Assembly (NCBI GenBank): GCA_964019335.1
Contig: OZ025705.1
Coordinates: forward strand, 310,001 to 374,000
DNA from: Diplonema japonicum
Taxonomy: Eukaryota > Protista > Euglenozoa: Diplonemea
DNA length: 64,000 bases
Direction of reading: 5' to 3'
The notes under the pieces are model-generated. The model was not told the DNA's origin and searched no databases. It saw nothing but the letters and a program-made list of their open reading frames with translations. How positions within the stretch are numbered: the stretch's first letter is position 1; each line of letters starts with the position of its first letter. This document shows, one piece after another, positions 21,583 to 62,015 of the stretch. The position numbers and the translations under genes are program-made.

Positions 21583-22425
21583 TCACCCGATGAGCTTGCA
21601 CTGAGAGGCAACGTCGCACTTCACCCTGCACTGGGCGTACCACTGGCTCTGCTGGTAGCAACGGCTCGGTGCCTCACAGCAAGAGGGTGACGACAGGCAG
21701 CTTCCCCATTCCGCGATCTTGGGACCAGAGCAGGTGCCCGCGGGAGGGGCATCTGTTGGTGCAGGGGTTTTTTCGACATTCGGTACCGGTGTCGGGACAG
21801 GGGTGGAAACACCCCCTCCTGTGGGTGCCGGAGTGGGGAGGGGCGTCGGGACAGGGGTCGTGCTGCCACCGTTGAAGTCAAGGTCGATGGCGTTGTAGAA
21901 GCTGGCAGAGGTGTCACCGACATCCCAGACTGCAAGGACCACGTGGTAGCCGCTCCTGGTCGGGACTGTGCAGGAGTGGGTCACTGTCATCGGGGGCTGC
22001 TGCATCTCCCCGTCCACCGTGCAGAAGGGGGTCCCCTCCAAGGTCTCCCTCCCGAGAGGGTCCACCCCGTTCCACCCCTCCTTCGTGATGAAGTACCTCC
22101 AGTCCCGCGTCACGTGGTTCGCTGTGAACTGCCACGTGAAGTCCATCGCCCCGCTGCTCACAGAGGTCTTCGCCCACCTCGTCGTCGACTGCTCGTTCAG
22201 GGGCGCCCAGTTGTCCTTCCCAGCAGCAGCCACCGTCCCGTCCGCAGGGCCAGTCTCGGGGTACCGGTCCTCCCCCTCCACGCTCTGCGGCTCGTACTGC
22301 ACACCACCGCAGCCGCTGTTGCTCCCCTCCTTGCAGGCGAAGTTTCTTGACGGGGGTGCCTTCACGTAGCCGTGCCCCTGCACCGTGGCGAACAGAGCTG
22401 TCGTGCAGAGAAGGGAACGCAGCAT
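21583..22425 (-). CDS. Secreted AA10 lytic polysaccharide monooxygenase, isoform A (Pro/Thr linker + CBM1-like module)
   Basis: Signal peptide MLRSLLCTTALFATVQG then mature N-terminal HGYV; QYEPQSVEG, FTANH, WRYFITK, LAVWDVGDT, FYNAID; C-terminal WGSC...CC...CYQQSQWYAQC. Confidence 0.93.
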   Translation of the reverse strand: MLRSLLCTTALFATVQGHGYVKAPPSRNFACKEGSNSGCGGVQYEPQSVEGEDRYPETGPADGTVAAAGKDNWAPLNEQSTTRWAKTSVSSGAMDFTWQFTANHVTRDWRYFITKEGWNGVDPLGRETLEGTPFCTVDGEMQQPPMTVTHSCTVPTRSGYHVVLAVWDVGDTSASFYNAIDLDFNGGSTTPVPTPLPTPAPTGGGVSTPVPTPVPNVEKTPAPTDAPPAGTCSGPKIAEWGSCLSSPSCCEAPSRCYQQSQWYAQCRVKCDVASQCKLIG

Positions 22426-23138
22426 TGGTGTTAAGGTTTTGTGGTGGTTGTTGAGGTATGAAACCTGCGTGTCGGGGTGCGGTGCGTTGAAAGGTAGGCA
22501 CAACAAAGAAAATGAAGAAAGAAAGAAAGAAAGAAAGAAAGAAGAGAGAGAATTAACAGGGCTGCGGAAAGGCCCAAAATTCGTTCGGTCAAAAACGAGA
22601 CAAAAAAAGCAAGCTTTGGAGAATAAGGAGATAAAGTTTTAACAAAATAAGTTTTAAATAATAATAAGAAGAAAGAAAGAAAGAATGAAGAGAGAGGTGT
22701 ATTATGTAGCACCCACTTACCAGATGAAGCTAAGGGGTTGTCACCGTTAGAGTGGCCTAATAAGGAAACGGTGTCGTGTGAGGAGCTTGCTTTTGCTCTT
22801 TTGAAGAGAGAAAAGGAAACAAACAGAGAGAGAGGGAGAGAGAGGGAGGGAGGGCATGCATGTATGAGCGTGTTGCATAATAACGATTTACCACACAAAA
22901 AGAAAAGGGAGGAAGTGGAGGAGAACACAAAAGCGAACTGGCGTACTTCTGCCCCGGGAAATATTTCCACAAGACAAGGAACAGAACGGTAAAGGAGCGT
23001 GACCCAGAGTCACTTAACACTCTTTGCCTTAGTTTCTGTTCAGTAGTTGGTTATTATTTCTTTTTCTTCTTCTTTTTTTTTTTTCTCTTTTTTTTCTTTT
23101 TTTCATTTTTTGTCCCCTCCTCTTACAACTTCAGATCA

Positions 23139-24702
23139 CTAGTTGCTGATCTTCACACACTCCGGTGCGTAGTTGCAGACAGACAGACACCTGGCCCACC
23201 ACTTGTTCTGCTGGTAGCACGACAGCCCGGCCTCACAGCAGTTCGGGTTCGAGAGACATCCTCCCCAAGCACTGATCCTGCTGGCGCAGGTAGGATCGGA
23301 AGTGGGTACTGGCGTGGAGGCGGCGACTGTTGGCTGGGGAGTAGGGGCAGGAGTAGGAGCAGGAGTGGAAGGAGCTGTTGGCTGAGGAGTAGGGGCAACC
23401 GTTGGCTCAGGGGTGGGAGCAGGAGTGGACGGGGTCACGGGCTTGGGAGTGGGTGCCGGTGCCACGGTGGGCTGGGGAGTAGGTGCAGGGGTCGGCATGG
23501 GGGTGGACGCGGGAGGAGGGTTTCCGTGGCTGCACCCCCCGGCAGGGCTGACGGAGGCACCGACCGCCTGCGACCAGGCCCCGTTGGTGTCGTGAAGAGC
23601 GACCCAGAAGAAGGCCCCCCCCCGTTGCAGGGGTACTCCTTGTTCAGGTCATTCATCACGCTGACAGCCTGCTGCGCGTTGCTGTTGGAGTTGGTCCCCC
23701 CGCAGTCGCTGATGCAGAAGCCGAAGACCACCTTCGTCGGGTCGTTCCCGAAGCAGTCTGTCACGTGTGGGTCTTGAGGTGCTGCAAAGCAGACTCGTAG
23801 ACGCCCCCGTTGATCCCGTCCGAGTTGGGGCGCGTCACCCCGTTGTAGTACTGCGGCATGATGAAGTCCACAGAGCTCGCCACCTCCTTGATGACGTTGT
23901 AGTAGCCGGTCCCCTGCTTCATTCGATGTCCATCGGTGCGTGCGTCACCTCACCGCCAGCAGGGAGCTTCTGCTTCAGCCCGACAGTCACCTCCTTCAAA
24001 AAGGCCTGCGCCTGTGCCCCCTTCGCGAAGGGGGACCCGTTGTGCCCGTCCTCGTAGTAGTACTCGTAGTCGATGTCCACCCCGTCGAAGCCCTGGTCCC
24101 GCGAGATGTCCACCAGTTGCTGGATCACGAAGTCCTCCTTCCCGTAGCAGTACTCCCAGCAGTCGTTCTTCCCGTCCCACGAGCCTCCCATCCCGGCCCC
24201 GCCGAAGGACAGGATCACCTTCTTCCCAGCCGCACGCCACTTCTGCACCAGGGCGGGCTGCGGGGCGTTTCCGCACACCGGCACGGGCGTCGAGATCACG
24301 CACTGCTGGTTGCAGGTGTTCTTCCCCGGGCTCCACGTGTAGGTCACCGCGAAGGACACGAGGACGTGTGTGTAGGCGTTCATCTGTGCGTCGGTGGGGC
24401 ACGCCTGCCAGTTCCCGACGTAGGCGATCATCCTGCTGTCCTCCGATGCCTGAGCCGGAGGACCGGGCGGCGGCGTGGGAGGGGCGGGGGTCGGAGGCGG
24501 TGCCGGCACAGTGCCCCCCATCGATGGGCACCACGTTGCTTGGTTCGACGCGCACACACCAGCACTCGTAGCACGGCTCCGCCCACCCTGACTTGTAACA
24601 AGGCGCACCCATGTTGATGCAACGCTGGCACTCCTCCACAGTCTGCCCTGAAACACCTCCCGCAAGCAGCATCATCCCAAGAAGCACCCGAGACGTTCTC
24701 AT
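23139..24702 (-). pseudogene. Secreted GH18 chitinase with Pro/Thr linkers and CBM1-like module, four frameshifts
   Basis: Signal peptide from ATG 24702; KVILSFGG, FDGVDIDYE (DxDxE), VDFIMPQYYNG, NGGAFFW. Frame changes near 24565, 23922, 23765 and 23615-23623. Confidence 0.85.
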
Positions 24703-25207
24703 TTTATTTGTGTGTAGTGTTGTGAAAACTGTGGAAAGGATAGGGCTCATCAAAAACACACAACTCATCAAATTATCTTCAATGCATCCCTCAGGGTGTC
24801 AAATGGATCAAAAAAAAACTCGATGATTTAAAGGAAGCCGGTGGGGGCACCCTGCACAAGCACCATTTACTTGATTACAGAGGGCGCACCTCGGCCTAGC
24901 TGTAGCTTCTTCTGCGTTCCGCGTTGTGTCCTTAATGCGTGCGGTGTGCAGCTCAACCCCAGCCGGGGCGCCCCGGGTAACCAAGATTCTGAGCCCGTGT
25001 AGTTTGCTGCCTGTTCGCCACCCAGAGCATCTGCTTCTTCCACTTGGGCGCTACCGGTGATGACCGACGAGGAGGTCAACAGCGAACAACACATCTGATG
25101 TACTTCTTTATATTTCCATGTTATCCCCACCAAAAAAAAATAAAATAAAAAAAAAGGCAGGTTTTCGTGACGTTGCATATTTCTTTTCTCATTCTTTTCT
25201 GTCCCCC

Positions 25208-26300: not shown

Positions 26301-26331
<31 letters not shown>

Positions 26332-26334
<3 letters not shown>

Positions 26335-27334
26335 ACATTTAAGGGTACCTGCGGTATGTGGCAGGACGCCTGAAGAGTCTCAATCTATCTCTTGATCGAA
26401 CCTTTCTGCTGTGGTGTGGCCTTCGGCCCCTCGTTCACCCTCCTCGGTACCTTAGGTATAAAACCCTCAACCGAGTTGGTAAGGACACAATAGTTGTACA
26501 GTTGTTTCTCAAGGATGTGGCGGGTCACCGGGGAGGCGAATACCGGTCTAGAGGAGTAGCCCCTTACGGAGCTGTTGTAGTAACCCAACGTGCGCAGGGA
26601 GTGGACAGAGACTACTGACGCAGCTGGGATGAGGGGCGCTATGCCCTTACTGGTGTGGATGCGTTCTAGTGCCGTTATCACCCGGCCTATTACACGCGCG
26701 CTCACTTGGATGTCCTCACCCTCTTCACAAGGTGAGAGTCCCACCGTGGCAATGAAGTCTATGGCCAGCTCAAGCCTGGAGACCTGTCCACCTGTCGTGC
26801 CCCAGTGAAGGGCAGAGAGCCATCGGATGACGTGCGGGATGAGCCGTGGGAGGCACTGTTGCCTCAAACCATTGTCGTAGTGCCACCTCAGTGACCGTGG
26901 CTTGAGCAAACTCCCCTTCTCGAAAGGCCTGTTCCACAGGTGAACGCTGAAGTCCATCGTCTTTTTCCGTGCAAAGGTGAGTTGTAAGCTACCAGTGATC
27001 TCCGCCATCATCAGCTGCAACTCGGCAGTGTCCAGCCCGAGTCCCACTGTCGCGATGCCGTGCAGTTGCGTGCACCGGGGCCACTGGTTACGTTGTGTGC
27101 ACAGCGCTGCTCGCGTCTCGGAAGCTGTCCTGATGTGCTCGTGCGCCTGACAGTCCCAGAGGGTGTGCTCCAGGAGTCTCGCCGTGTGTTCCGAAATGTC
27201 GAAAGTAGCGTCGCAGCCCATGCATTTCGTCCGCCCCCCGACCGTGTCGTTGATGATCTTGGGGTGGAACGGGAAAACAGCCCCAGTTATCACTTGCAGT
27301 ACCCTTCGTGCTTTGGGAGGGTTGCGGTTCGCCA
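26332..27334 (-). mobile_element. 5'-truncated copy (1003 bp) of the non-LTR retrotransposon
   Basis: Matches 2198-3200 at offset 24134 with about five substitutions seen; preceded by A31 on the + strand. Confidence 0.95.
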
Positions 27335-27797: not shown

Positions 27798-27831
<34 letters not shown>

Positions 27832-44603: not shown

Positions 44604-46043
<1,440 letters not shown>

Positions 46044-46081: not shown

Positions 46082-46291
46082 AATAATATTAATAAGTTCG
46101 ACACTCAATAAAGAGGGCTGCAAAAGCCGTAGCTGTTGCTATCCACTCTTTCTCTTGTTTCAAAATCAAAGATAAGTTTAAAGACGGGGGAAGAGGAGGG
46201 ACTCTTTCCTCCTCGAAAAAAACAACTTTTTTATCTACAATTGCGGGGGGGGGGGGGGGGATAAAGAAAAAGAAAAGGGCACAGAGAGGGC

Positions 46292-49995: not shown

Positions 49996-51046
49996 TTTGC
50001 TTTTTTGTTTTTCTCTCTTTTTCTTTTTTTTTTTTTATGGTGGTCTACTTTAAAGAACGTTTCCCATTAGGATATAGAAAATATTTTTAAAAAAAAGAAC
50101 AAAAAGATTTTTCTCTTTTTCCTTCCCCCTTCCTGTCCCTGACGGCGCCAAAGGATATTCAACGGCCTGAGAGGTCGTCCGAAGGTTCAGAAGGGGGAAA
50201 GGAGAAAGGGAGAGAGGGAGGGAAAGTTTAAAAAAGTCGATGCAAACTCCGCGCGAGAGCCGCAGGCCAAAAAAAAAAAAGAAAAAAGAAAAAAAGAAAG
50301 AAAGAAAGAATAAGAAAAGTCGGAGTGTATATTTTCTTAGAAAAGGGGGCCTTCTTGTCGAGTGCATGCTAGTCACACCACAAAAAAAAAAAGGTCTGTT
50401 TTTTTTTTTTTTTTTTTCATTTTTCAAAAATAGAAAAAAAGCCGCCATTTCCACGTAAAAACGATTTTCGCCTTTCATAAAAGGAAGCAGGGAAGACAGA
50501 CAGAGGCAACAACCCGTTGCCGTCTGTTGTCGTGTTGAGGAAGAAAGAAATTGAAAACAAAAAAAGATAATAAAAGAAAAGAGAATTAAAAAAAAAAAAA
50601 AAAAAAAGCAATCGAGGGAGAAGAATATCAGAGGGGGGGGGGGGGGGGGGGGTTGAGCAAAAGACGATTGTCACAAAAGGGAAAAGAGAAAGGGTCACAC
50701 ATCATGGGTGAGAGAGAAAAAAAAGAAGGGAAGCCAAAAAAATAAAATAAAATAAAAGAAAGTGATGAAGGAAAGCAGCTGTCCCCTGGGAATACGGGTC
50801 CACAGGGAGGAGAACACAGACATGTTGCGTAGCGAAAGACAAAGGCGTGACTCAGAGTCACGAAAGGTCACCCTCGCCTCACATTGCTGTGCCTCTTCAG
50901 ATGGTGTGGTTCATTTGTTTTGTTTTATTTATTTTTTTTGTTTTTCTTTTTAAAAAACTTTTGGCTTGTCATCCTTCATTTTTTTTTTCTTCTCATTTCT
51001 TCAATCCTCGTTTCATTTTAACATTTTTAGTTTTTTTTTTTCTCCA

Positions 51047-51955
51047 TCACCCGATGAGCTTGCACTGAGAGGCGACGTCGCACTTCACCCTGCACTGGGC
51101 GTACCACTGGCTCTGCTGGTAGCAACGGCTCGGTGCCTCACAGCAAGAGGGTGACGACAGGCAGCTTCCCCACTCCGCAATCTTGGGACCAGAGCAGGTG
51201 CCCGCAGGAGAAGGCGGGTTCGTGGGGACAGGTGTGGGAACAGGGGTCGACACGGGAACAGTGGACCCACCTGCTGGGGTGGGTGTGGGTGTGGGGGTGG
51301 GTGCAGGTGTGGGAACAGGTGTCGCGGTGGTGGTACTGCCACCGTTTCCATTGCCGCTGCTGCTGCTGCCACCACCAAAGTTGTTGCTGGCACCGTTGAA
51401 GTCAAGGTCGATGGCGTTGTAGAAGCTGGCAGAGGTGTCACCGACATCCCAGACTGCAAGGACCACGTGGTAGCCGCTCCTGGTCGGGACCGTGCAGGAG
51501 TGGGTCACCCCAGAGAGAGGAGGCTGCTGCATCTCCCCGTCCACCGTGCAGAAGGGGGTCCCCTCCAAGGTCTCCCTCCCGAGAGGGTCCACCCCGTTCC
51601 ACCCTTCCTTCGTGATGAAGTACCTCCAGTCCCGCGTCACGTGGTTCGCCCTGAAGGCCCACGTGAAGTCCATCGCCCCGCTGCTCACAGAGGTCTTCGC
51701 CCACCTCGTCGTCGACTGCTCGTTCAGGGGCGCCCAGTTGTCCTTCCCAGCAGCAGCCACCGTCCCGTCCGCAGGGCCTGTCTCGGGGTACCGGTCCTCC
51801 CCCTCCACGCTCTGCGGCTCGTACTGCACCGCCCCGCAGTTCGTGTTCCTCTTCTGGTTGCACGACCAGCTCCTCGACGACGGGGTCACCACGTAGCCGT
51901 GCCCCTGCGCTGAGGCGAACAGGGCGGTCACGCAGACAACAGAGCGCAGCATCAT
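51047..51955 (-). CDS. Secreted AA10 LPMO isoform C (Pro/Thr linker + CBM1-like)
   Basis: Catalytic domain identical to isoform B; different linker. Confidence 0.93.
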   Translation of the reverse strand: MMLRSVVCVTALFASAQGHGYVVTPSSRSWSCNQKRNTNCGAVQYEPQSVEGEDRYPETGPADGTVAAAGKDNWAPLNEQSTTRWAKTSVSSGAMDFTWAFRANHVTRDWRYFITKEGWNGVDPLGRETLEGTPFCTVDGEMQQPPLSGVTHSCTVPTRSGYHVVLAVWDVGDTSASFYNAIDLDFNGASNNFGGGSSSSGNGNGGSTTTATPVPTPAPTPTPTPTPAGGSTVPVSTPVPTPVPTNPPSPAGTCSGPKIAEWGSCLSSPSCCEAPSRCYQQSQWYAQCRVKCDVASQCKLIG

Positions 51956-52387
51956 TTCTTTGTTGTTGTTTTTTTTTTCTTAAAGTGTTTTGGGGTTACA
52001 AAAACCTGTGTGCGTTGAGAGGTGGTTTTGTTAGATGGAAGTGTGTCTCGAGAGAAAAGAAAGAAGAAAGGAAAAAAAGGAACAGCAAGGTCGCATCCAG
52101 CATTCTAGAAAAGGAAAAGAACACCAACACAAACAGAAGTGGTATGAAGGATACTTCTGCATCAAAAATACTATTGCATCAAGGGTGGACCAATATCCAC
52201 CGCTCGACATTCGTACCTTTGCACCCATAATGGACCAGCTAGAGATGAATAGGGTGGAAGATAGAGAAGGCCGTCTTTGGAGACCACATGAAAGGATGAA
52301 ACAATCACGATCACGATTTGTGGTGGTGACGACGAACATTCGGATATATTATTTATTATTATTATCATTATTTTCCCCTTCACACAT

Positions 52388-52696
52388 TCAAAGCTTTGTC
52401 GCGACCACAGCCTTGATCTTCCCATCCTCTATGGTGAAGGTTTCCTTCGCCTTCAGTGTGAGGAGCAGCATCTTCGCCTTCATCGTGCGGGTGAACTGCT
52501 TCCCGTCGGCGGACGCTTCGGGCTCCGAATGCCCGTAGAAGTCAGGCATGTCACTCAGAAGCTGCTTCCTCAAGGCCCCCTTTCCATTCGCCTCAAACTT
52601 CGGGTTCTTGAAGTGCACGTCTTCCGTCATCAAGCTCAGCATCCCGTCAACGTCCTTCGACTTCGTGAACTTCGTGTACTGCGCGATAACCTCCAT
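52388..52696 (-). CDS. NTF2/SnoaL-like domain protein (102 aa)
   Basis: DVDGMLSLMTEDVHF..P, GKGALR, ETFTIEDGKI pattern typical of the SnoaL-like fold. Confidence 0.75.
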   Translation of the reverse strand: MEVIAQYTKFTKSKDVDGMLSLMTEDVHFKNPKFEANGKGALRKQLLSDMPDFYGHSEPEASADGKQFTRTMKAKMLLLTLKAKETFTIEDGKIKAVVATKL

Positions 52697-53023
52697 GTTT
52701 GCGATTGGTGTTTGTGGGGCTGCAGATGGGGGTGAGTGGGGGGGGTGGGTTTGCTTGTAAAGAATGCCTTGTTGTCAAAAACAAAAAATAAAATAAATCA
52801 AAAACCGGGGGGGGGGGGGGGGGTTAGAAACTATAATAAGAGGGCTGCAAAAGCCGTAGCTGTTGCTATCCACTCTTTCTCTTGTTTCAAAAAAATCAAA
52901 GATAAGTTTAAAGACGGGGGAAGAGGAGGGACTCTTTCCTCCTCGAAAACAAAAAAAATACTTTTTTATCTACAATTGCGAGGGAGGGGGGGATAAAGAA
53001 AAAGAAAAGGGCACAGAGAGGGC

Positions 53024-53302
53024 TTATTTCCCAGGGAACTGAGCGTTCTTCTGCTGCTCAAGGAGTTCCTGGAACTTCTGCTTGAAGTGAGCGGAGTGGT
53101 CCCTCATCTTCTTGTTGAACTTGTCGGTGTGCTCCTTGATCATCTTCTCGAACTTGTCGTAGTGCTCCTTCATCTCAGGCGACAGGGTCGACTCGTCGGG
53201 CTTGTCCGCGAAGAACTTCTTGTTCTGCTCCTCCATCTTCTTGCTGAACTCGGCATCGAGGCGGTCGAGCTTGTCGCTGAACTCCTGGTACGTGGTGCAC
53301 AT
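53024..53302 (-). CDS. KMP11: KMP-11 homolog, copy 2
   Basis: Identical to 46292-46570. Confidence 0.96.
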   Translation of the reverse strand: MCTTYQEFSDKLDRLDAEFSKKMEEQNKKFFADKPDESTLSPEMKEHYDKFEKMIKEHTDKFNKKMRDHSAHFKQKFQELLEQQKNAQFPGK

Positions 53303-54281
53303 CTTTCTCTTTTTTTTTGGTTGTTTAAAGGTTGTTTGTGTTGTGTGGCCCTTTTTGTTGTCTTATTTTGGAAAGAAGAACGATTCATAGAAAACACAAA
53401 ATATAAACGGATTCATTTTTCTCTTTTCCTTCCCCCTTCCTGTCCCTGACGGCGCCAAAGGATATTCAACGGCCTGAGAGGTCGTCCGAAGGTTCAGAAG
53501 GGGGAAAGGAGAAAGGGAGAGAGGGAGGAAGGGAGGGAGGGAAAGTATAAAAAAGAAGACTTGAACTGTATATTCTTAAAAGGGTACCTTCGTCCAGTGC
53601 AATGCAGGTCTGCACGCAACCACAAAAGAAGGCCACCCTCTTATTTGTTCTTTTTTTAAAGCCACCACTTCCACGTAAAGACGATTATCACCTTTCATAA
53701 AAGGAAGCAGGGAAGACAGACAGAGGCAACAACCCGTTGCCGTCTGTTGTCGTGTTAAGGAAGAAGTGAAACTTGAAACAAACAAAAGGGGAAAACCATT
53801 TAAGGGTATCTGCGGTATGTCGCAGAAGGCTTAAATAATAAAGGTAAAAAAAAAAGGGAAACAAACGAGAGAGAAGATATGTCAGAGGAGGGGGTTTGTG
53901 TTTGGTATTAAACAAAAGAAAAATACGATTGCCACAAAGGGGAGAAGGGAAAGGGGGCACATCAAACAAGAATCGTTGTGAAAGAAGAAGGAGAAAAAAA
54001 AAGAAAGAGGAAAGCATCATATGTGGGTCCACAGCGAAGAGAACACACAGACAGGTAAGCAGAGAGGTGGCGTGACTCGGAGTCACGAAAGGCCCACGCC
54101 TTTGCTTGATTTCTTGTGGTTCTCTTCTTGGTTGCCATCCTTCCTTTTTTTTCCCTTCGATTTCGGTTCATTTTAATGTTTGTTTGTTTTTTTTTTCTTG
54201 TTTGTTGTTTTTGTTTTTTTTTTTTTTGTTTTTTTTTTTTTTGGTTTTTTTTTTTTTTTTTTTGCCAGCTCCTCAGCACCA

Positions 54282-55283
54282 TCACCCGATGAGCTTGCAC
54301 TGAGAGGCAACGTCGCAAGTCACCCTGCACTGGGCGTACCACTGGCTCTGCTGGTAGCAACGGCTCGGTGCCTCACAGCAAGAGGGTGACGACAGGCAGC
54401 TTCCCCACTCCGCAATCTTGGGACCAGAGCAGGTGCCCGCGGGAGGGGGCAGGTTCGTGGGGACGGTTGCGGTGGTGGTACTGCTGCCGCTGTTGCTGCT
54501 GCTGGTACTGCCACCACTGCTGCTGCTGCCGGTGGTGGTGGTGCTGCCACCGCTGGTGGTGGTGGTACTGCCACCGCTGCTGGTACTGCCGCCGTTGAGG
54601 CTGCTGCTGCTGCTGCTGCTGGTGGTGGTGGTGGTGGTGGTACTGCTGCTGCTGCTGGTACTGCCACCACTGCTGCTGCTGCTGCTGCCGCCATTACCAC
54701 TACCAAAGTTGTTGCTGGCACCGTTGAAGTCAAGGTCGATGGCGTTGTAGAAGCTGGCAGAGGTGTCACCGACATCCCAGACTGCAAGGACCACGTGGTA
54801 GCCGCTCCTGGTCGGGACCGTGCAGGAGTGGGTCACCCCAGAGAGAGGAGGCTGCTGCATCTCCCCGTCCACCGTGCAGAAGGGGGTCCCCTCCAAGGTC
54901 TCCCTCCCGAGAGGGTCCACCCCGTTCCACCCTTCCTTCGTGATGAAGTACCTCCAGTCCCGCGTCACGTGGTTCGCCCTGAAGGCCCACGTGAAGTCCA
55001 TCGCCCCGCTGCTCACAGAGGTCTTCGCCCACCTCGTCGTCGACTGCTCGTTCAGGGGCGCCCAGTTGTCCTTCCCAGCAGCAGCCACCGTCCCGTCCGC
55101 AGGGCCTGTCTCGGGGTACCGGTCCTCCCCCTCCACGCTCTGCGGCTCGTACTGCACCGCCCCGCAGTTCGTGTTCCTCTTCTGGTTGCACGACCAGCTC
55201 CTCGACGACGGGGTCACCACGTAGCCGTGCCCCTGCGCTGAGGCGAACAGGGCGGTCACGCAGACAACAGAGCGCAGCATCAT
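54282..55283 (-). CDS. AA10 LPMO isoform B, copy 2
   Basis: Identical to 47550-48551. Confidence 0.93.
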   Translation of the reverse strand: MMLRSVVCVTALFASAQGHGYVVTPSSRSWSCNQKRNTNCGAVQYEPQSVEGEDRYPETGPADGTVAAAGKDNWAPLNEQSTTRWAKTSVSSGAMDFTWAFRANHVTRDWRYFITKEGWNGVDPLGRETLEGTPFCTVDGEMQQPPLSGVTHSCTVPTRSGYHVVLAVWDVGDTSASFYNAIDLDFNGASNNFGSGNGGSSSSSSGGSTSSSSSTTTTTTTSSSSSSSLNGGSTSSGGSTTTTSGGSTTTTGSSSSGGSTSSSNSGSSTTTATVPTNLPPPAGTCSGPKIAEWGSCLSSPSCCEAPSRCYQQSQWYAQCRVTCDVASQCKLIG

Positions 55284-55980
55284 TTCTTTGTTGTTGTTTT
55301 TTTTTTCTTAAAGTGTTTTGGGGTTACAAAAACCTGTGTGCGTTGAGGTGGATAGGAAAGGAGAAGGAATAAAAGGAAATAAAGAAGCCCCTCCCTCAAT
55401 TCTGTACCAAAGCAAAGGAGCAAAATACAGAAAGGGGGTGAGTGAAGAAAAAAAGAGAACAACATCTTCAACATCAGCAGCTTTTTATTTTATTTTTTTT
55501 CGGACAAGAACTGTAGCAAATGGCAAAGAGGAGAAGGGGAAGAAGAAAAAGTTGGTGGTTGATGCACACCAACCAAGTTAGGGAGAAGCCAAAAGCAAAA
55601 GCAAAAACAAAAACAAAAGGAGTATGCTGCACACCTTGGAGGAAGAAATAACTATTTCAAAAAAAAGAAGAAGAAACCCCATTGATCTTCCAGGATAGCC
55701 TGTGGAAGTATGGAACCAAATGAAATGAAATGAAGGCCCTCCAGCGCACACACATATCGGAAAAAAATAAGAAAATCAAAAAACAGAGAGAAAGTTTCAG
55801 TGTGCATGGGGGTGCTTACTGTTGTAGAAAAGAAAGAAAGGAAGGAAAAAACCCCCAACAAAGATAGTGGGGAAGAACTTGGTGTTTTTGAGATTTAAGA
55901 TTTAGTGACTCATCGGAAATTTAAACATCACACAAAAGAGAAGCGAAAAAGAAGTGTTTTATTTTTCTTTTTTTTTCATT

Positions 55981-56727
55981 TTATTGTTTGAGGAGGATGT
56001 CAGAGCAGCCCTGCTGCTTGCAGACCTCTTCCAGATTGGAGGCGTTGCTCTCGCAGGAGAGACCCTTTGCATGCATCCTGCCCAGAACAGTCGACTCGGA
56101 GAGGTAGAAGTTCGCGAAGGGTGTCATGAAGTCCTCGGAGATGCTCTTCTCGCAGAGCCCCGTCTTCATGAGGGCTGCCCGCCAGTTTTGCACCTTCGGG
56201 TAGCCGTGAGCAAAGTCGTAGCCGGTCTTCTCCTTGATGATCTGTGTTCGGTGCAGCAAAGGAAGCCAGGTCATGTCCACTGTGCTCACGGTGTCGCTGT
56301 TGAAGAACTCCGCCCCCCCAAGCACCTTCTCCACCTTCGCAAAGGCCGTCGCTATCTTCATCGTCCGCTCCCTCAACGTCTCCCCGTCACTGCTGGACTG
56401 CGCCCCGCACTGCGGCATGTAGTTCTTGCTCCCGAGGTACCCCCAAGCCCTGTTCTGCGCCCTCTGCACGAGGCTCAGGTCCGGCTGCAGGGCAGGGTAA
56501 GCCTCCTCGATGTACTCCGCGATCGCCTCCGACTCGAACAGCACCTCCTCCTTCTCAGTCACAAGCAGCGGCACCTGCCCGTTGGGCGAGATGTCCAAAA
56601 ACCACTGCGGCTTCTCCTTCAGGTTGATGTACTCCACAACGTAAGGGGTCTTCTTCGCCTCCAGCAGGGCCGTGATCCGCTGAACGAAGGGGCAGATCTT
56701 GAAGCTGATCACTTTTAACACCGGCAT
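55981..56727 (-). CDS. Omega/DHAR-like GST, copy 2
   Basis: Identical to 49249-49995. Confidence 0.9.
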   Translation of the reverse strand: MPVLKVISFKICPFVQRITALLEAKKTPYVVEYINLKEKPQWFLDISPNGQVPLLVTEKEEVLFESEAIAEYIEEAYPALQPDLSLVQRAQNRAWGYLGSKNYMPQCGAQSSSDGETLRERTMKIATAFAKVEKVLGGAEFFNSDTVSTVDMTWLPLLHRTQIIKEKTGYDFAHGYPKVQNWRAALMKTGLCEKSISEDFMTPFANFYLSESTVLGRMHAKGLSCESNASNLEEVCKQQGCSDILLKQ

Positions 56728-57778
56728 TTTGCTTTTTTGTTTTTCTCTCTTTTTCTTTTTTTTTTTTTATGGTGGTCTACTTTAAAGAACGTTTCCCATT
56801 AGGATATAGAAAATATTTTTAAAAAAAAGAACAAAAAGATTTTTCTCTTTTTCCTTCCCCCTTCCTGTCCCTGACGGCGCCAAAGGATATTCAACGGCCT
56901 GAGAGGTCGTCCGAAGGTTCAGAAGGGGGAAAGGAGAAAGGGAGAGAGGGAGGGAAAGTTTAAAAAAGTCGATGCAAACTCCGCGCGAGAGCCGCAGGCC
57001 AAAAAAAAAAAAGAAAAAAGAAAAAAAGAAAGAAAGAAAGAATAAGAAAAGTCGGAGTGTATATTTTCTTAGAAAAGGGGGCCTTCTTGTCGAGTGCATG
57101 CTAGTCACACCACAAAAAAAAAAAGGTCTGTTTTTTTTTTTTTTTTTTTCATTTTTCAAAAATAGAAAAAAAGCCGCCATTTCCACGTAAAAACGATTTT
57201 CGCCTTTCATAAAAGGAAGCAGGGAAGACAGACAGAGGCAACAACCCGTTGCCGTCTGTTGTCGTGTTGAGGAAGAAAGAAATTGAAAACAAAAAAAGAT
57301 AATAAAAGAAAAGAGAATTAAAAAAAAAAAAAAAAAAAAGCAATCGAGGGAGAAGAATATCAGAGGGGGGGGGGGGGGGGGGGGTTGAGCAAAAGACGAT
57401 TGTCACAAAAGGGAAAAGAGAAAGGGTCACACATCATGGGTGAGAGAGAAAAAAAAGAAGGGAAGCCAAAAAAATAAAATAAAATAAAAGAAAGTGATGA
57501 AGGAAAGCAGCTGTCCCCTGGGAATACGGGTCCACAGGGAGGAGAACACAGACATGTTGCGTAGCGAAAGACAAAGGCGTGACTCAGAGTCACGAAAGGT
57601 CACCCTCGCCTCACATTGCTGTGCCTCTTCAGATGGTGTGGTTCATTTGTTTTGTTTTATTTATTTTTTTTGTTTTTCTTTTTAAAAAACTTTTGGCTTG
57701 TCATCCTTCATTTTTTTTTTCTTCTCATTTCTTCAATCCTCGTTTCATTTTAACATTTTTAGTTTTTTTTTTTCTCCA

Positions 57779-58687
57779 TCACCCGATGAGCTTGCACTGA
57801 GAGGCGACGTCGCACTTCACCCTGCACTGGGCGTACCACTGGCTCTGCTGGTAGCAACGGCTCGGTGCCTCACAGCAAGAGGGTGACGACAGGCAGCTTC
57901 CCCACTCCGCAATCTTGGGACCAGAGCAGGTGCCCGCAGGAGAAGGCGGGTTCGTGGGGACAGGTGTGGGAACAGGGGTCGACACGGGAACAGTGGACCC
58001 ACCTGCTGGGGTGGGTGTGGGTGTGGGGGTGGGTGCAGGTGTGGGAACAGGTGTCGCGGTGGTGGTACTGCCACCGTTTCCATTGCCGCTGCTGCTGCTG
58101 CCACCACCAAAGTTGTTGCTGGCACCGTTGAAGTCAAGGTCGATGGCGTTGTAGAAGCTGGCAGAGGTGTCACCGACATCCCAGACTGCAAGGACCACGT
58201 GGTAGCCGCTCCTGGTCGGGACCGTGCAGGAGTGGGTCACCCCAGAGAGAGGAGGCTGCTGCATCTCCCCGTCCACCGTGCAGAAGGGGGTCCCCTCCAA
58301 GGTCTCCCTCCCGAGAGGGTCCACCCCGTTCCACCCTTCCTTCGTGATGAAGTACCTCCAGTCCCGCGTCACGTGGTTCGCCCTGAAGGCCCACGTGAAG
58401 TCCATCGCCCCGCTGCTCACAGAGGTCTTCGCCCACCTCGTCGTCGACTGCTCGTTCAGGGGCGCCCAGTTGTCCTTCCCAGCAGCAGCCACCGTCCCGT
58501 CCGCAGGGCCTGTCTCGGGGTACCGGTCCTCCCCCTCCACGCTCTGCGGCTCGTACTGCACCGCCCCGCAGTTCGTGTTCCTCTTCTGGTTGCACGACCA
58601 GCTCCTCGACGACGGGGTCACCACGTAGCCGTGCCCCTGCGCTGAGGCGAACAGGGCGGTCACGCAGACAACAGAGCGCAGCATCAT
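57779..58687 (-). CDS. AA10 LPMO isoform C, copy 2
   Basis: Identical to 51047-51955. Confidence 0.93.
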   Translation of the reverse strand: MMLRSVVCVTALFASAQGHGYVVTPSSRSWSCNQKRNTNCGAVQYEPQSVEGEDRYPETGPADGTVAAAGKDNWAPLNEQSTTRWAKTSVSSGAMDFTWAFRANHVTRDWRYFITKEGWNGVDPLGRETLEGTPFCTVDGEMQQPPLSGVTHSCTVPTRSGYHVVLAVWDVGDTSASFYNAIDLDFNGASNNFGGGSSSSGNGNGGSTTTATPVPTPAPTPTPTPTPAGGSTVPVSTPVPTPVPTNPPSPAGTCSGPKIAEWGSCLSSPSCCEAPSRCYQQSQWYAQCRVKCDVASQCKLIG

Positions 58688-59119
58688 TTCTTTGTTGTTG
58701 TTTTTTTTTTCTTAAAGTGTTTTGGGGTTACAAAAACCTGTGTGCGTTGAGAGGTGGTTTTGTTAGATGGAAGTGTGTCTCGAGAGAAAAGAAAGAAGAA
58801 AGGAAAAAAAGGAACAGCAAGGTCGCATCCAGCATTCTAGAAAAGGAAAAGAACACCAACACAAACAGAAGTGGTATGAAGGATACTTCTGCATCAAAAA
58901 TACTATTGCATCAAGGGTGGACCAATATCCACCGCTCGACATTCGTACCTTTGCACCCATAATGGACCAGCTAGAGATGAATAGGGTGGAAGATAGAGAA
59001 GGCCGTCTTTGGAGACCACATGAAAGGATGAAACAATCACGATCACGATTTGTGGTGGTGACGACGAACATTCGGATATATTATTTATTATTATTATCAT
59101 TATTTTCCCCTTCACACAT

Positions 59120-59428
59120 TCAAAGCTTTGTCGCGACCACAGCCTTGATCTTCCCATCCTCTATGGTGAAGGTTTCCTTCGCCTTCAGTGTGAGGAGCAG
59201 CATCTTCGCCTTCATCGTGCGGGTGAACTGCTTCCCGTCGGCGGACGCTTCGGGCTCCGAATGCCCGTAGAAGTCAGGCATGTCACTCAGAAGCTGCTTC
59301 CTCAAGGCCCCCTTTCCATTCGCCTCAAACTTCGGGTTCTTGAAGTGCACGTCTTCCGTCATCAAGCTCAGCATCCCGTCAACGTCCTTCGACTTCGTGA
59401 ACTTCGTGTACTGCGCGATAACCTCCAT
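59120..59428 (-). CDS. NTF2/SnoaL-like protein, copy 2
   Basis: Identical to 52388-52696. Confidence 0.75.
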   Translation of the reverse strand: MEVIAQYTKFTKSKDVDGMLSLMTEDVHFKNPKFEANGKGALRKQLLSDMPDFYGHSEPEASADGKQFTRTMKAKMLLLTLKAKETFTIEDGKIKAVVATKL

Positions 59429-59755
59429 GTTTGCGATTGGTGTTTGTGGGGCTGCAGATGGGGGTGAGTGGGGGGGGTGGGTTTGCTTGTAAAGAATGCC
59501 TTGTTGTCAAAAACAAAAAATAAAATAAATCAAAAACCGGGGGGGGGGGGGGGGGTTAGAAACTATAATAAGAGGGCTGCAAAAGCCGTAGCTGTTGCTA
59601 TCCACTCTTTCTCTTGTTTCAAAAAAATCAAAGATAAGTTTAAAGACGGGGGAAGAGGAGGGACTCTTTCCTCCTCGAAAACAAAAAAAATACTTTTTTA
59701 TCTACAATTGCGAGGGAGGGGGGGATAAAGAAAAAGAAAAGGGCACAGAGAGGGC

Positions 59756-60034
59756 TTATTTCCCAGGGAACTGAGCGTTCTTCTGCTGCTCAAGGAGTTC
59801 CTGGAACTTCTGCTTGAAGTGAGCGGAGTGGTCCCTCATCTTCTTGTTGAACTTGTCGGTGTGCTCCTTGATCATCTTCTCGAACTTGTCGTAGTGCTCC
59901 TTCATCTCAGGCGACAGGGTCGACTCGTCGGGCTTGTCCGCGAAGAACTTCTTGTTCTGCTCCTCCATCTTCTTGCTGAACTCGGCATCGAGGCGGTCGA
60001 GCTTGTCGCTGAACTCCTGGTACGTGGTGCACAT
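59756..60034 (-). CDS. KMP11: KMP-11 homolog, copy 3
   Basis: Identical to 46292-46570. Confidence 0.96.
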   Translation of the reverse strand: MCTTYQEFSDKLDRLDAEFSKKMEEQNKKFFADKPDESTLSPEMKEHYDKFEKMIKEHTDKFNKKMRDHSAHFKQKFQELLEQQKNAQFPGK

Positions 60035-61013
60035 CTTTCTCTTTTTTTTTGGTTGTTTAAAGGTTGTTTGTGTTGTGTGGCCCTTTTTGTTGTCTTATTT
60101 TGGAAAGAAGAACGATTCATAGAAAACACAAAATATAAACGGATTCATTTTTCTCTTTTCCTTCCCCCTTCCTGTCCCTGACGGCGCCAAAGGATATTCA
60201 ACGGCCTGAGAGGTCGTCCGAAGGTTCAGAAGGGGGAAAGGAGAAAGGGAGAGAGGGAGGAAGGGAGGGAGGGAAAGTATAAAAAAGAAGACTTGAACTG
60301 TATATTCTTAAAAGGGTACCTTCGTCCAGTGCAATGCAGGTCTGCACGCAACCACAAAAGAAGGCCACCCTCTTATTTGTTCTTTTTTTAAAGCCACCAC
60401 TTCCACGTAAAGACGATTATCACCTTTCATAAAAGGAAGCAGGGAAGACAGACAGAGGCAACAACCCGTTGCCGTCTGTTGTCGTGTTAAGGAAGAAGTG
60501 AAACTTGAAACAAACAAAAGGGGAAAACCATTTAAGGGTATCTGCGGTATGTCGCAGAAGGCTTAAATAATAAAGGTAAAAAAAAAAGGGAAACAAACGA
60601 GAGAGAAGATATGTCAGAGGAGGGGGTTTGTGTTTGGTATTAAACAAAAGAAAAATACGATTGCCACAAAGGGGAGAAGGGAAAGGGGGCACATCAAACA
60701 AGAATCGTTGTGAAAGAAGAAGGAGAAAAAAAAAGAAAGAGGAAAGCATCATATGTGGGTCCACAGCGAAGAGAACACACAGACAGGTAAGCAGAGAGGT
60801 GGCGTGACTCGGAGTCACGAAAGGCCCACGCCTTTGCTTGATTTCTTGTGGTTCTCTTCTTGGTTGCCATCCTTCCTTTTTTTTCCCTTCGATTTCGGTT
60901 CATTTTAATGTTTGTTTGTTTTTTTTTTCTTGTTTGTTGTTTTTGTTTTTTTTTTTTTTGTTTTTTTTTTTTTTGGTTTTTTTTTTTTTTTTTTTGCCAG
61001 CTCCTCAGCACCA

Positions 61014-62015
61014 TCACCCGATGAGCTTGCACTGAGAGGCAACGTCGCAAGTCACCCTGCACTGGGCGTACCACTGGCTCTGCTGGTAGCAACGGCTCGG
61101 TGCCTCACAGCAAGAGGGTGACGACAGGCAGCTTCCCCACTCCGCAATCTTGGGACCAGAGCAGGTGCCCGCGGGAGGGGGCAGGTTCGTGGGGACGGTT
61201 GCGGTGGTGGTACTGCTGCCGCTGTTGCTGCTGCTGGTACTGCCACCACTGCTGCTGCTGCCGGTGGTGGTGGTGCTGCCACCGCTGGTGGTGGTGGTAC
61301 TGCCACCGCTGCTGGTACTGCCGCCGTTGAGGCTGCTGCTGCTGCTGCTGCTGGTGGTGGTGGTGGTGGTGGTACTGCTGCTGCTGCTGGTACTGCCACC
61401 ACTGCTGCTGCTGCTGCTGCCGCCATTACCACTACCAAAGTTGTTGCTGGCACCGTTGAAGTCAAGGTCGATGGCGTTGTAGAAGCTGGCAGAGGTGTCA
61501 CCGACATCCCAGACTGCAAGGACCACGTGGTAGCCGCTCCTGGTCGGGACCGTGCAGGAGTGGGTCACCCCAGAGAGAGGAGGCTGCTGCATCTCCCCGT
61601 CCACCGTGCAGAAGGGGGTCCCCTCCAAGGTCTCCCTCCCGAGAGGGTCCACCCCGTTCCACCCTTCCTTCGTGATGAAGTACCTCCAGTCCCGCGTCAC
61701 GTGGTTCGCCCTGAAGGCCCACGTGAAGTCCATCGCCCCGCTGCTCACAGAGGTCTTCGCCCACCTCGTCGTCGACTGCTCGTTCAGGGGCGCCCAGTTG
61801 TCCTTCCCAGCAGCAGCCACCGTCCCGTCCGCAGGGCCTGTCTCGGGGTACCGGTCCTCCCCCTCCACGCTCTGCGGCTCGTACTGCACCGCCCCGCAGT
61901 TCGTGTTCCTCTTCTGGTTGCACGACCAGCTCCTCGACGACGGGGTCACCACGTAGCCGTGCCCCTGCGCTGAGGCGAACAGGGCGGTCACGCAGACAAC
62001 AGAGCGCAGCATCAT
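61014..62015 (-). CDS. AA10 LPMO isoform B, copy 3
   Basis: Identical to 47550-48551. Confidence 0.93.
   Translation of the reverse strand: MMLRSVVCVTALFASAQGHGYVVTPSSRSWSCNQKRNTNCGAVQYEPQSVEGEDRYPETGPADGTVAAAGKDNWAPLNEQSTTRWAKTSVSSGAMDFTWAFRANHVTRDWRYFITKEGWNGVDPLGRETLEGTPFCTVDGEMQQPPLSGVTHSCTVPTRSGYHVVLAVWDVGDTSASFYNAIDLDFNGASNNFGSGNGGSSSSSSGGSTSSSSSTTTTTTTSSSSSSSLNGGSTSSGGSTTTTSGGSTTTTGSSSSGGSTSSSNSGSSTTTATVPTNLPPPAGTCSGPKIAEWGSCLSSPSCCEAPSRCYQQSQWYAQCRVTCDVASQCKLIG

Follow-up and report, generated by a model that had tools for sequence, protein, structure and literature searches.

The 64,000-nt stretch of Diplonema japonicum DNA analysed here, hereafter the window, contains seven intact open reading frames encoding lytic polysaccharide monooxygenases (LPMOs) of family AA10, all of which lie on the minus strand and contain neither stop codons nor frameshifts (Table 1). 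Five of the seven are located in a tandem array and two in the arms of a segmental duplication. All seven proteins cover positions 1-183 of the 183 positions of the Pfam profile LPMO_10 (PF03067), with E-values from 1.5e-43 to 4e-45 and scores of 150-155 bits against a curated cut-off of 23. In all copies, a hydrophobic leader ends in AQG or VQG directly before HGY, so that signal cleavage, at a site placed by eye according to the -3/-1 rule, would expose His1. The second histidine of the brace (H87, in the motif ANH) and the axial phenylalanine (F160 of the mature domain) are invariant in an alignment of diplonemid and bacterial sequences, and they correspond to H114 and F187 of CBP21; these AA10s likewise show no variation in His1, in the Glu of YEPQSVE, in WDVGDT or in the Phe of SFY. 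The C-terminal tail contains exactly eight cysteines in each of the seven proteins. The series of seven genes with leader, His1, ANH, linker and 8-Cys module, as described in an earlier note on this DNA, is therefore confirmed by ORF reading and by the LPMO_10 matches, except that the first two genes start at an ATG (at 22425 and 38519) and not at the upstream TTG. The GbpA motifs that it had named (QYEPQSVEG, F(T/R)ANHVT, LAVWDVGDT and SFYN) were all found, in alignment with the structures of GbpA and CBP21. On the basis of these sequence features, we infer that the window genes are functional nuclear AA10 LPMO genes of D. japonicum, whose products are predicted to be secreted, to bind copper and to depend on it.

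Table 1. Features of the window (coordinates in nucleotides from its first letter)
Feature	Position	Strand	Evidence
Segmental duplication, arm 1	20854-24726		self-BLAST
AA10 LPMO copy 1, 280 aa; signal peptide, His1, catalytic domain, Pro/Thr linker, 8-Cys CBM1-like module	21583-22425	-	Pfam LPMO_10, E 4e-45
Pseudogene of a GH18 chitinase, beside LPMO copy 1; C-terminal CBM1-like module of its own	23142-24705	-	Pfam Glyco_hydro_18, E 3e-9
Segmental duplication, arm 2	36958-40150		self-BLAST
AA10 LPMO copy 2, 280 aa, protein identical to copy 1	37677-38519	-	
GH18 remnant beside LPMO copy 2	39466-40135	-	self-BLAST, frame reading
Tandem array, unit of 6732 bp, 2.66 units within the window	46107-64000		self-BLAST
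KMP-11 (euglenozoan flagellar/cytoskeletal protein) within unit	46292-46570; copies 53024-53302, 59756-60034	-	Pfam KMP11, E 4e-52
AA10 LPMO type A, unit 1, 333 aa, Ser/Thr-rich linker	47550-48551	-	LPMO_10, E 2e-43
Glutathione S-transferase (GST) within unit	49249-49995; copies 55981-56727, 62713-63459	-	Pfam GST_N_2, E 4e-18; GST_C_2
AA10 LPMO type B, unit 1, 302 aa, Pro/Thr linker	51047-51955	-	LPMO_10, E 1.5e-43
Type B unit 1: Cys module	51050-51196	-	
Type B unit 1: linker	51197-51391	-	
Type B unit 1: catalytic domain	51392-51901	-	
Type B unit 1: signal peptide	51902-51955	-	
SnoaL-like small protein within unit	52388-52696; copy 59120-59428	-	Pfam SnoaL_2, E 6e-6
AA10 LPMO type A, unit 2, protein identical to unit 1 type A	54282-55283	-	
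AA10 LPMO type B, unit 2, protein identical to unit 1 type B	57779-58687	-	
AA10 LPMO type A, unit 3, protein identical to unit 1 type A	61014-62015	-	

The arms of the segmental duplication (3-4 kb) are 94-100% identical, and arm 2 lacks about 0.9 kb of GH18 sequence. Both LPMO genes of the duplication do adjoin GH18 sequence, as had been noted before, but neither neighbour is a living chitinase gene. The one beside copy 1 retains DGVDIDYE and shows four reading-frame changes relative to intact paralogues of 516-568 aa (frame-by-frame reading and tblastn). In the one beside copy 2, an internal in-frame deletion fuses the N-terminal third to the Cys module, with loss of the DxxDxDxE motif. The first of the frame changes is present in both duplicated copies. 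The changes were ruled out as introns, because there is no additional sequence relative to the paralogues, and rejected as HiFi homopolymer errors, because the two sites checked base by base lie outside homopolymers. Intact GH18-linker-module genes exist elsewhere in the genome, where 58 GH18 matches were found, and 10 of 49 LPMOs lie less than 10 kb from a GH18 against about 0.6 expected, these counts being non-independent and inflated by segmental and near-contig-end copies.

Each unit of the tandem array contains KMP-11, an LPMO, a GST, a further LPMO and a SnoaL-like protein, and the array terminates with one more type B LPMO gene just past the window (C58:374514-375419). In an assembly built from PacBio HiFi and Hi-C data of D. 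japonicum YPF1604 (62.3 Mb; PMC13598402), the units are 100% identical when positions 46900-52834, almost 6 kb, are compared with the same stretch shifted by 6732, so that the exact copy number of the array depends on the assembler; the copies of KMP-11 are likewise exact. The presence of KMP-11 within the unit places the LPMO genes in genuine protist DNA, as the earlier note had proposed. Other same-strand neighbours of LPMO genes are a kinase, cathepsin L, a JmjC protein and a non-LTR retrotransposon. The GC3 richness that had been remarked on is borne out: the LPMO genes have a GC3 of 0.79-0.84, and in their catalytic part it reaches 0.90. It was ruled out as an indication of foreign descent, because KMP-11 (0.90), cathepsin (0.92) and GST are equally high, compared with 0.54 for ordinary neighbours; high GC3 is here the host signature of highly expressed genes.

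The amplification extends well beyond what had been anticipated from the window. Genome-wide, PF03067 gives 52 matches, of which 49 are full-length and spread over about 20 contigs, and at least 48 intact AA10 genes fall into five subfamilies. The 48 intact genes that we fetched all encode a leader, His1, a linker and the module, apart from two in which the module is truncated. The family has grown by tandem and segmental duplication, and the window shows both modes. Transcription is established for at least the copy 1/2 type, in that all 280 residues of the copy 1 protein agree with EukProt entry P0003, which is derived from a transcriptome. Ten D. japonicum AA10 transcripts are given at 150-1574 TPM in Additional file 4 of Valach et al. 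(2023, PMC10161547), where neighbouring GH rows stand at about 6-90 TPM. Between paralogous catalytic domains, dN/dS is 0.05-0.45; these domains are under purifying selection.

Domain 1 of GbpA (N-acetylglucosamine-binding protein A of Vibrio and related marine Gammaproteobacteria; PDB 2XWX, 7PB6 and 8GUL) aligns with the window LPMOs at E-values of about 1e-58. The catalytic domains of named GbpAs are 56-60% identical to theirs and bear the same His brace and the motifs YEPQSVEG, ANHVT and WDVGDT..SFYN, the two domains differing in length only by the loop that follows His1, which is shorter in the window LPMOs. CBP21 (SmLPMO10A of Serratia marcescens, 2BEM), a single-domain protein and the reference chitin-oxidising AA10, aligns from His1 to the end at 1e-53. 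The equivalents of its Y54, E55, E60, H114, D182 and F187 are retained, and its N185 is Ala in the window LPMOs, as it is in GbpA. In contrast, the window LPMOs match only LPMO_10 in Pfam and lack GbpA domains 2 and 3 (PF18416 and PF21868) as well as domain 4, which is of the CBM5/12/73 type, whereas bacterial relatives carry PF21868, PF18416 and PF02839. Unlike GbpA, the window LPMOs possess a low-complexity linker of eukaryotic type and a module of the Cys-knot kind, and their family is encoded by dozens of protist nuclear genes.

This module is absent from all of the roughly 220 bacterial AA10 matches retrieved, and it is present on many host secreted proteins, mostly GH18 chitinases, in agreement with the earlier proposal of a fusion to a host module. 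Since a metallophosphoesterase and a glycine-rich protein bear it as well, the module alone is no indication that chitin is the target. The label 'CBM1-like' is a fair description, but the module of the window falls below the Pfam threshold (13.6 bits against CBM_1, PF00734, with a cut-off of 20.6 bits; E 0.063), and the match covers the C-terminal half of the profile only. Among 14 module variants, the best reached E 7e-4, and CBM_1 was the top Pfam family for 11. A six-frame search of the genome with CBM_1 gave a single match above the cut-off, on an unrelated ORF, and thus the LPMO modules are not canonical CBM1. In the module alignment, C4, W12, C15, C21, C22, C28, W34 and C38 are invariant; the core C-x6-WGxC-x5-CC-x5-C-x5-WYxQC, three aromatics and the Gln before the last Cys resemble those of the six-Cys CBM1 of fungi. 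The spacing, which otherwise appears to be that of the six-Cys form, differs in a loop after WGxC that is about four residues shorter, so that the GGxxWxG stretch is missing, and a C-terminal extension gives the window-type module a fourth Cys pair. When an AF2 model (pLDDT 87) is fitted to the CBM1s of CBHI and cellobiose dehydrogenase, the deviation over 36 columns is about 1.9-2.0 A. In Foldseek, 1CBH gave a TMt of 0.73 and an rmsd of 1.9 (36 columns), the CDH CBM1 had an identity of 28%, and E-values were at least 0.1 throughout; psalmotoxin outscored CBM1 there, and spider knottin toxins score equal to CBM1 against the module in both sequence-profile and fold searches. In the ESM Atlas, the top named cluster was CBM_1 at 0.76, a lead only, and a region-restricted search with the module alone, whose reach is limited by word index and length window, returned D. 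japonicum AA10s only. The module might represent a new form of the CBM1 fold, one that binds chitin.

How might a protist have obtained such genes? AA10 LPMOs are held to be enzymes essentially of bacteria and viruses. In searches of 5.8 and 1.8 billion proteins, the closest non-diplonemid relatives were bacterial AA10s at 56-64% identity, many of them with the GbpA domain set. These relatives are marine gammaproteobacterial (Halieaceae, Zooshikella, Hahella, Vibrio and Granulosicoccus), the genera named among the best being Halioglobus, Luminiphilus, Congregibacter, Zooshikella and Hahella, and P0015 is the closest bacterial match. The same AA10 architecture is found in Diplonema ambulator, Rhynchopus euleeides and a Rhynchopus-like ENA genome, and the transfer was therefore neither recent nor species-specific. 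The ENA relatives P0010-P0018, P0131, P0160 and P0166 are termed diplonemid-like on the strength of architecture and of resemblance to Rhynchopus euleeides; P0162, like P0160, is also diplonemid-like. In an IQ-TREE tree of a 70-row subset, chosen via a FastTree of 186 rows and rooted on Bacillota, a Diplonema clade (99/96) and a Rhynchopus-type clade (99/97) lie inside a clade dominated by Gammaproteobacteria (84/96), the deeper nesting branches having support of 84/96 and 98/89. Diplonemid AA10s are monophyletic in 38% of the bootstrap trees and backbone support is 37-47, so that the tree is compatible with one or two transfers into diplonemids and names no specific donor. Nesting within a bacterial clade, a patchy distribution in eukaryotes and the interleaving with KMP-11 in host DNA all suggest horizontal acquisition, and the marine gammaproteobacterial origin of a GbpA-domain-1/CBP21-like domain, as suggested in the earlier note, is upheld by the nearest relatives and the nested position.

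We consider it probable that an AA10 of the gammaproteobacterial GbpA/CBP21 type was acquired, refitted with a host module and multiplied, and that it likely serves chitin oxidation in D. japonicum. The catalytic domain would have been gained from a marine gammaproteobacterium by an ancestor of Diplonema and Rhynchopus, the classic diplonemids, and the LPMO domain alone would have been retained. In place of GbpA domains 2-4 there is a Pro/Thr or Ser/Thr linker, probably O-glycosylated, with one or two CBM1-like cysteine-knot modules of the host type, such as are also attached to host GH18 chitinases, and tandem and segmental duplication would then have turned the fused gene into at least 48 intact genes. 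After cleavage of the signal peptide, copper would be held by His1 and the second His, and the module would anchor the enzyme on a crystalline polysaccharide, most likely chitin. C1-oxidised chain breaks might then make the crystal accessible to the large GH18 set, with which we suppose that the LPMOs act in synergy. The substrate-face residues YEPQSVE and WDxxDT are kept and, in structure matches and the tree, the window genes group with chitin-active CBP21/GbpA types, a resemblance from which we infer that chitin is the substrate; the proteins probably act by catalysis rather than adhesion.

Could the genes be something other than acquired LPMOs of the host? The perfect identity of the tandem units might raise the suspicion of bacterial contamination or an assembly chimera, for which we see virtually no room: KMP-11, GST and LPMOs alternate in one unit, 49 copies are spread over about 20 contigs, the linker and module are eukaryote-specific, the transcriptome with the exact protein match is independent, and the sequence is present in the reads of independent studies, in that ten sequencing runs of one organism from three studies contained 71-85% of the unit's sampled 31-letter words. 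Nor is it at all likely that AA10 was already present in the ancestor of Euglenozoa or of eukaryotes and passed down vertically, with the gammaproteobacterial likeness due to reverse transfer or slow evolution, although the genes are common to several diplonemid genera and their codon usage is fully host-adapted. In both searches, the eukaryotic matches were confined to diplonemids and diplonemid-like genomes, with a single unplaced protein of eukaryote-like character besides, and in the tree the diplonemid clades branch from within a diverse bacterial radiation rather than beside it; tree and searches thus put these AA10s among bacteria and not in a broad eukaryotic clade. Paradiplonema papillatum is moreover reported to be without LPMOs (Additional file 1 of Valach et al. 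2023, PMC10161547), for which loss in that species or a later gain in the other lineages must be assumed.

As real LPMOs, the enzymes might still have as their target cellulose or another polysaccharide of algae or prey. CBM1 modules are classically cellulose binders, and the best family for the module is CBM_1, the fungal cellulose-binding domain; P0160 and P0166, from the Rhynchopus-like relative, join AA10 to a GH5 cellulase-family domain, and diplonemids carry many CBM1-bearing cellulases (Valach et al. 2023, PMC10161547). We nevertheless regard this as unlikely, since the catalytic domain groups with chitin-active GbpA and CBP21 and keeps the CBP21 surface residues Y54, E55, E60 and D182, and since the module in the D. 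japonicum genome is mostly on GH18. Even less probable is a mainly non-catalytic role as adhesins to chitinous or mucin-like surfaces, as for GbpA in Vibrio colonisation. GbpA domain 1 is the nearest solved relative, but it is itself a catalytically active LPMO; the domains that bind the bacterial surface (2 and 3) are gone, as is domain 4, and the His-brace and second-sphere residues are invariant in 48 paralogues under purifying selection. The very high and constitutive expression in axenic culture seen in published TPM values (Valach et al. 2023, PMC10161547) would fit such adhesins.

Beyond our preferred reading of an acquired, refitted and multiplied chitin-oxidising AA10, a more speculative extension, which we hold to be possible but rather doubtful, is that classic diplonemids have a self-contained oxidative chitin system of bacterial derivation, in which AA10 and GH18 enzymes share one knottin-type module and AA7-like FAD oxidases supply H2O2. 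Such a system would comprise dozens of highly expressed AA10s, a new targeting module that is either a strongly diverged CBM1 or the founder of a separate family, and FAD oxidases that are adjacent and secreted.

Previous investigations of CAZyme transfers in the same lineage (Valach et al. 2023, PMC10161547; bioRxiv 10.64898/2026.01.29.702485) likewise describe bacterial, secreted and expanded enzymes. They treat GH, PL, CE and CBM families, with LPMOs stated to be absent from D. papillatum; D. japonicum AA10 appears in the supplementary tables of Valach et al. as ten uncommented rows. In our literature search, we found no main text pairing Diplonema or diplonemids with LPMO or AA10, and the Phytophthora 'AA10' reports concern a different, cellulose-annotated set. 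Because the paper on the model diplonemid says that LPMOs are lacking in Diplonema, the AA10 family changes the view of diplonemid digestion. By the published TPM values, AA10s are among the most highly expressed CAZymes of D. japonicum (Valach et al. 2023, PMC10161547).

D. japonicum is a protist that lives free in the sea and belongs to a group of heterotrophic plankton ranking among the most diverse, and it appears to have domesticated a GbpA-type AA10 with a linker and binding module of its own in about 50 genes. This family offers a natural experiment in domain shuffling following gene transfer and a eukaryote-expressed AA10 set for enzymology. Marine chitin turnover is credited chiefly to bacteria. 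If the self-contained system exists, the AA10 family may be unusually large for one genome, and the classic diplonemids, very abundant heterotrophs of the sea, would count among the significant chitin degraders of the eukaryotes. Our results suggest that an abundant group of ocean protists is able to attack chitin by a route known mainly from bacteria.

Every long ORF between 13 and 64 kb of the window lies on the minus strand, and seven of these genes encode AA10 LPMOs that match the Pfam LPMO_10 profile over its whole length (E 1.5e-43 to 4e-45). Each LPMO runs from a hydrophobic leader through a catalytic domain some 170 residues long and a low-complexity linker, which is Pro/Thr-rich in the 280- and 302-aa proteins and Ser/Thr-rich in the 333-aa protein, to a C-terminal module of 49 residues with eight Cys. 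The leader ends in AQG or VQG with HGY directly after it, and its predicted cleavage would leave a His as residue 1. The earlier note had this order of parts right but began the first two genes at an upstream TTG; the correct start is an ATG, and a EukProt transcriptome-derived protein is identical to copy 1 of the 280-aa LPMO read from that ATG.

Features in and around the window (plain numbers, window positions; C58, contig holding the window, with window position 1 at C58:310001; other C numbers, other contigs; L numbers, fetched loci, L008 lying on C58)
Feature	Position	Strand	Remark
Non-LTR retrotransposon ORF	2251-6543		1430 aa
Scaffold gap	15257-15456		200 N, inside ORF 15220-17292
piggyBac-type transposase fragment	19793-20605		
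Segmental duplication	20854-24726; 36958-40150		
LPMO copies 1 and 2	21583-22425; 37677-38519	minus	identical, 280 aa
GH18	23142-24705		
Non-LTR 3' fragment	26301-27334		about 1 kb
Cathepsin L-like protease	44604-46019		
Tandem array	46107 to window end		unit 6732 bp
LPMO type A	47550-48551; 54282-55283; 61014-62015	minus	identical, 333 aa
LPMO type B	51047-51955; 57779-58687	minus	identical, 302 aa
Third LPMO type B	C58:374514-375419		just past window end
Dirigent-like protein	L008:1971-2594		
AA7-like ORF	L008:3301-4914 (C58:377301-378914)	minus	538 aa
GDSL esterase	L008:6525-7316		
Another BBE match	C58:243139		
Metallophosphoesterases with module	L133 (C75:303163); L137/L138 (C108:149386, C108:164820)		
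Contig-end LPMOs	C104:1641; C104:299724; C39:578426; C11:810185; C5:886950; C61:495640; C13:12876		274 aa

Self-comparison of the window uncovered two kinds of duplication. Followed as it is transcribed, the unit of the tandem array encodes a SnoaL-like protein, then LPMO type B, GST, LPMO type A and finally KMP-11 (Pfam E 4e-52), and within the window KMP-11, type A and GST are present three times and type B twice. The units are 100% identical across nearly 6 kb, with differences confined to near 46.1-46.9 kb. The catalytic domains of types A and B are nucleotide-identical (dS = 0) and their modules nearly identical, whereas their linkers are quite different. The segmental duplication holds LPMO copies 1 and 2, and a GH18 gene lies upstream of the LPMO in both arms. 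The window also encodes a JmjC protein, a non-LTR retrotransposon with endonuclease and reverse transcriptase, and a cathepsin L-like protease (I29 propeptide, Peptidase_C1, DUF3586), whose in-frame Lys/Ile-rich insert right before the active-site Cys resembles a short intron that the ORF reads through. A 3' fragment of the retrotransposon, 99.3% identical, is situated between the LPMO/GH18 duplicates, and the segmental duplication is closely preceded by a piggyBac-type transposase fragment (DDE_Tnp_1_7).

How far does this family extend beyond the window? The assembly searched (62.5 Mb, 132 contigs) contains 52 matches to PF03067, of which 49 are full-length; they spread over about 20 contigs, and 14 lie on the window's own contig. 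Forty loci were fetched besides the window LPMOs, and the 48 intact genes in total form five subfamilies told apart by their leaders. Leader, His1 and linker are found in all 48; the module occurs as one 8-Cys, one 6-Cys or two 6-Cys units and is truncated in two copies. The dN/dS ratio of the catalytic domains ranges from 0.05 to 0.45 between paralogue pairs. The GC3 of the LPMO genes (0.79-0.90, against about 0.54 in ordinary neighbours) was considered as a trace of foreign DNA, which is ruled out by like values in KMP-11 (0.90), cathepsin (0.92) and GST (0.86); high GC3 here marks highly expressed host genes. This fits Valach et al. 2023, in whose Additional file 4 ten D. japonicum AA10 transcripts stand at 150-1574 TPM and the adjoining GH rows at roughly 6-90 TPM (PMC10161547). 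Near-identical 274-aa LPMO genes were also observed at distances between a few kb and about 17 kb from contig ends. Several have a GH18 match 7-8 kb away, which on C5, C11 and C61 is an ORF of about 2400-2540 aa containing more than one GH18 domain and on C39 and C104 a gene of 544-548 aa; the arrangement resembles a block that was duplicated near the ends of chromosomes.

The best solved-structure matches of the catalytic domain are to GbpA domain 1 (8GUL, 7PB6, 2XWX; E about 1e-58), followed by CBP21 (2BEM; E 1e-53). His1, the Glu of YEPQSVE, the His of ANH and the W, D, T, F and Y of WDVGDT..SFY are invariant in an alignment of diplonemid and bacterial sequences. Catalytic-domain identity is 56-60% to named GbpAs, 64% to P0015, the nearest of the unnamed bacterial proteins, and, with one genome per prokaryotic species, 57-61% to the nearest named bacteria, Zooshikella, Hahella and the Halieaceae Halioglobus, Luminiphilus and Congregibacter. 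GbpA domains 2 and 3 and the CBM5/12 of the bacterial relatives are absent from the window LPMOs. In an IQ-TREE tree (LG+C20+F+G4; 70 rows, 171 columns; Bacillota root), a Diplonema clade (99/96) and a Rhynchopus-type clade (99/97), which two divergent diplonemid-like proteins join at 80/86, both fall inside an otherwise Gammaproteobacteria-dominated GbpA-type clade (84/96). This nesting, which upholds the bacterial derivation proposed in the earlier note, leads us to infer that AA10 was transferred from bacteria to diplonemids, either before the Diplonema/Rhynchopus split or twice into them; the donor would have been a marine gammaproteobacterium, with no particular one singled out. Branches that separate the Diplonema clade from the Rhynchopus-type one have weak support (37-47); 38% of bootstrap trees recover the diplonemids as monophyletic, and nowhere does a well-supported branch of this tree demand more than one origin. 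None of the close AA10 relatives comes from the alphaproteobacterial endosymbionts of D. japonicum. A 326-aa protein from a 2.07-Mb ENA contig (P0018), consisting of AA10, a Pro/Thr linker and two CBM1-like modules, branches away from the diplonemid clades beside betaproteobacterial Andreprevotia-type sequences (support 80-96) and may be a separate acquisition by another eukaryote.

The closest proteins to the window LPMOs are from D. japonicum itself (identity 87% for the full protein and 97% for the catalytic domain), D. ambulator and Rhynchopus euleeides, and with both diplonemid clades lying among bacterial sequences we regard vertical inheritance of AA10 as very improbable. That the locus is an artefact is scarcely credible, for all the perfect identity of its array units: KMP-11 lies inside the LPMO-bearing unit, and copy 1 matches a EukProt protein exactly. 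The catalytic domain of the C13 subfamily is identical to a D. japonicum transcript. The published genome of strain YPF1604, an aquarium sand filter isolate, is 62.30 Mb from PacBio HiFi and Hi-C, and its paper does not mention chitin, LPMOs or CAZymes (PMC13598402).

The C-terminal module has a core, C-x6-WGxC-x5-CC-x5-C-x5-WYxQC, that is common to 14 variants, including the module of the GH18 pseudogene. CBM_1 is the top Pfam family for 11 of the 14 (best E 7e-4), although the window LPMO module reaches 13.6 bits against a cut-off of 20.6. A module profile searched against the PDB finds the CBM1s of cellobiohydrolase I and cellobiose dehydrogenase (E about 0.01) and also psalmotoxin (E 0.003); an AlphaFold model (pLDDT 87) can be overlaid on those CBM1s at 1.9-2.0 A (36 columns) and fits knottin toxins about equally, with all E-values non-significant. 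The nearest named ESM Atlas cluster is likewise CBM_1, at a lead-level score. Because these four weak indications agree, the earlier label "CBM1-like" seems a fair one, short of CBM1 membership. The module's loop after WGxC is presumably about 4 residues shorter than that of CBM1, and the window type has an extra Cys pair. The module forms the C-terminus of many intact GH18 chitinases as well as of a metallophosphoesterase and a glycine-rich protein, and occurs on every diplonemid-type AA10 among the matches and on none of about 220 bacterial AA10s; it is therefore a host part. Secreted calcineurin-like metallophosphoesterases at three loci carry it together with a "WNGPRIG" tail at the end, which suggests a general anchor of secreted proteins, beyond glycan-active enzymes.

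GH18 has 58 matches genome-wide, among them genes of 516-568 aa that comprise leader, small Cys motif, linker, GH18, linker and module, and ORFs of about 2400-2570 aa that have several GH18 domains each. A GH18 is found within 10 kb of 10 of the 49 LPMOs (about 0.6 expected) and within 30 kb of 10 of the 22 LPMO clusters, but these proximities are not independent, since many are copies of one near-contig-end block. In the window, the GH18 at 23142-24705 keeps DGVDIDYE and has four frame changes relative to intact 516-568 aa paralogues from other contigs; because the two sites read base by base have 1-2 nt missing or extra outside any homopolymer, in a HiFi assembly, it is read as a pseudogene. 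In the second copy, a loss of about 0.9 kb took out the catalytic motif and fused the N-terminal third of GH18 in frame with the module. Both GH18 genes adjoining window LPMOs are dead. The chitin reading draws mainly on the catalytic-domain clade and the conserved surface residues, and secondarily on the module's preferred partners. Substrate is the weakest link of the reading as a whole; cellulose or another glycan, which a CBM1-like module would suggest, is an unlikely alternative. Non-catalytic adhesion, a role suggested in the earlier note by likeness to GbpA, is less probable still; the invariant residues include His1 and the His of ANH.

The 538-aa ORF about 3.3 kb past the window end adjoins the last LPMO of the tandem array and has a signal-peptide-like leader with FAD_binding_4 and BBE domains, the type of an AA7-like oligosaccharide oxidase (12 BBE matches genome-wide); its product could supply the LPMOs with H2O2. 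The array and this gene have two others between and beside them, encoding a secreted dirigent-like protein and a GDSL esterase. In a Rhynchopus-like genome (ENA contigs of 0.8-2.3 Mb), single ORFs join AA10 with GH18 (P0131, 720 aa), with GH5 (P0160, 766 aa) and with GH5 and GH18 (P0166, 1011 aa), bearing the same Cys modules; given correct gene models, these would be LPMO-hydrolase fusions.

Neither the enzyme family AA10 nor the general theme that CAZymes were transferred into diplonemids is new. Our literature search met no main text pairing diplonemids with LPMO or AA10, and the sole trace of these genes was an uncommented supplementary table of Valach et al. 2023, whose supplement also gives LPMOs as the one category lacking in Diplonema papillatum (PMC10161547). 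Apparently undescribed so far are the transfer of AA10, the way its architecture was rebuilt, a family size of about 50 genes and the sharing of the module. Considered together, the sequences make it probable that the LPMOs are secreted Cu enzymes that the module would anchor to crystalline chitin, where C1-oxidised breaks would open it to the GH18 set of the host; possible sources of the chitin are prey, fibrils of diatoms, fungal walls and crustacean detritus.
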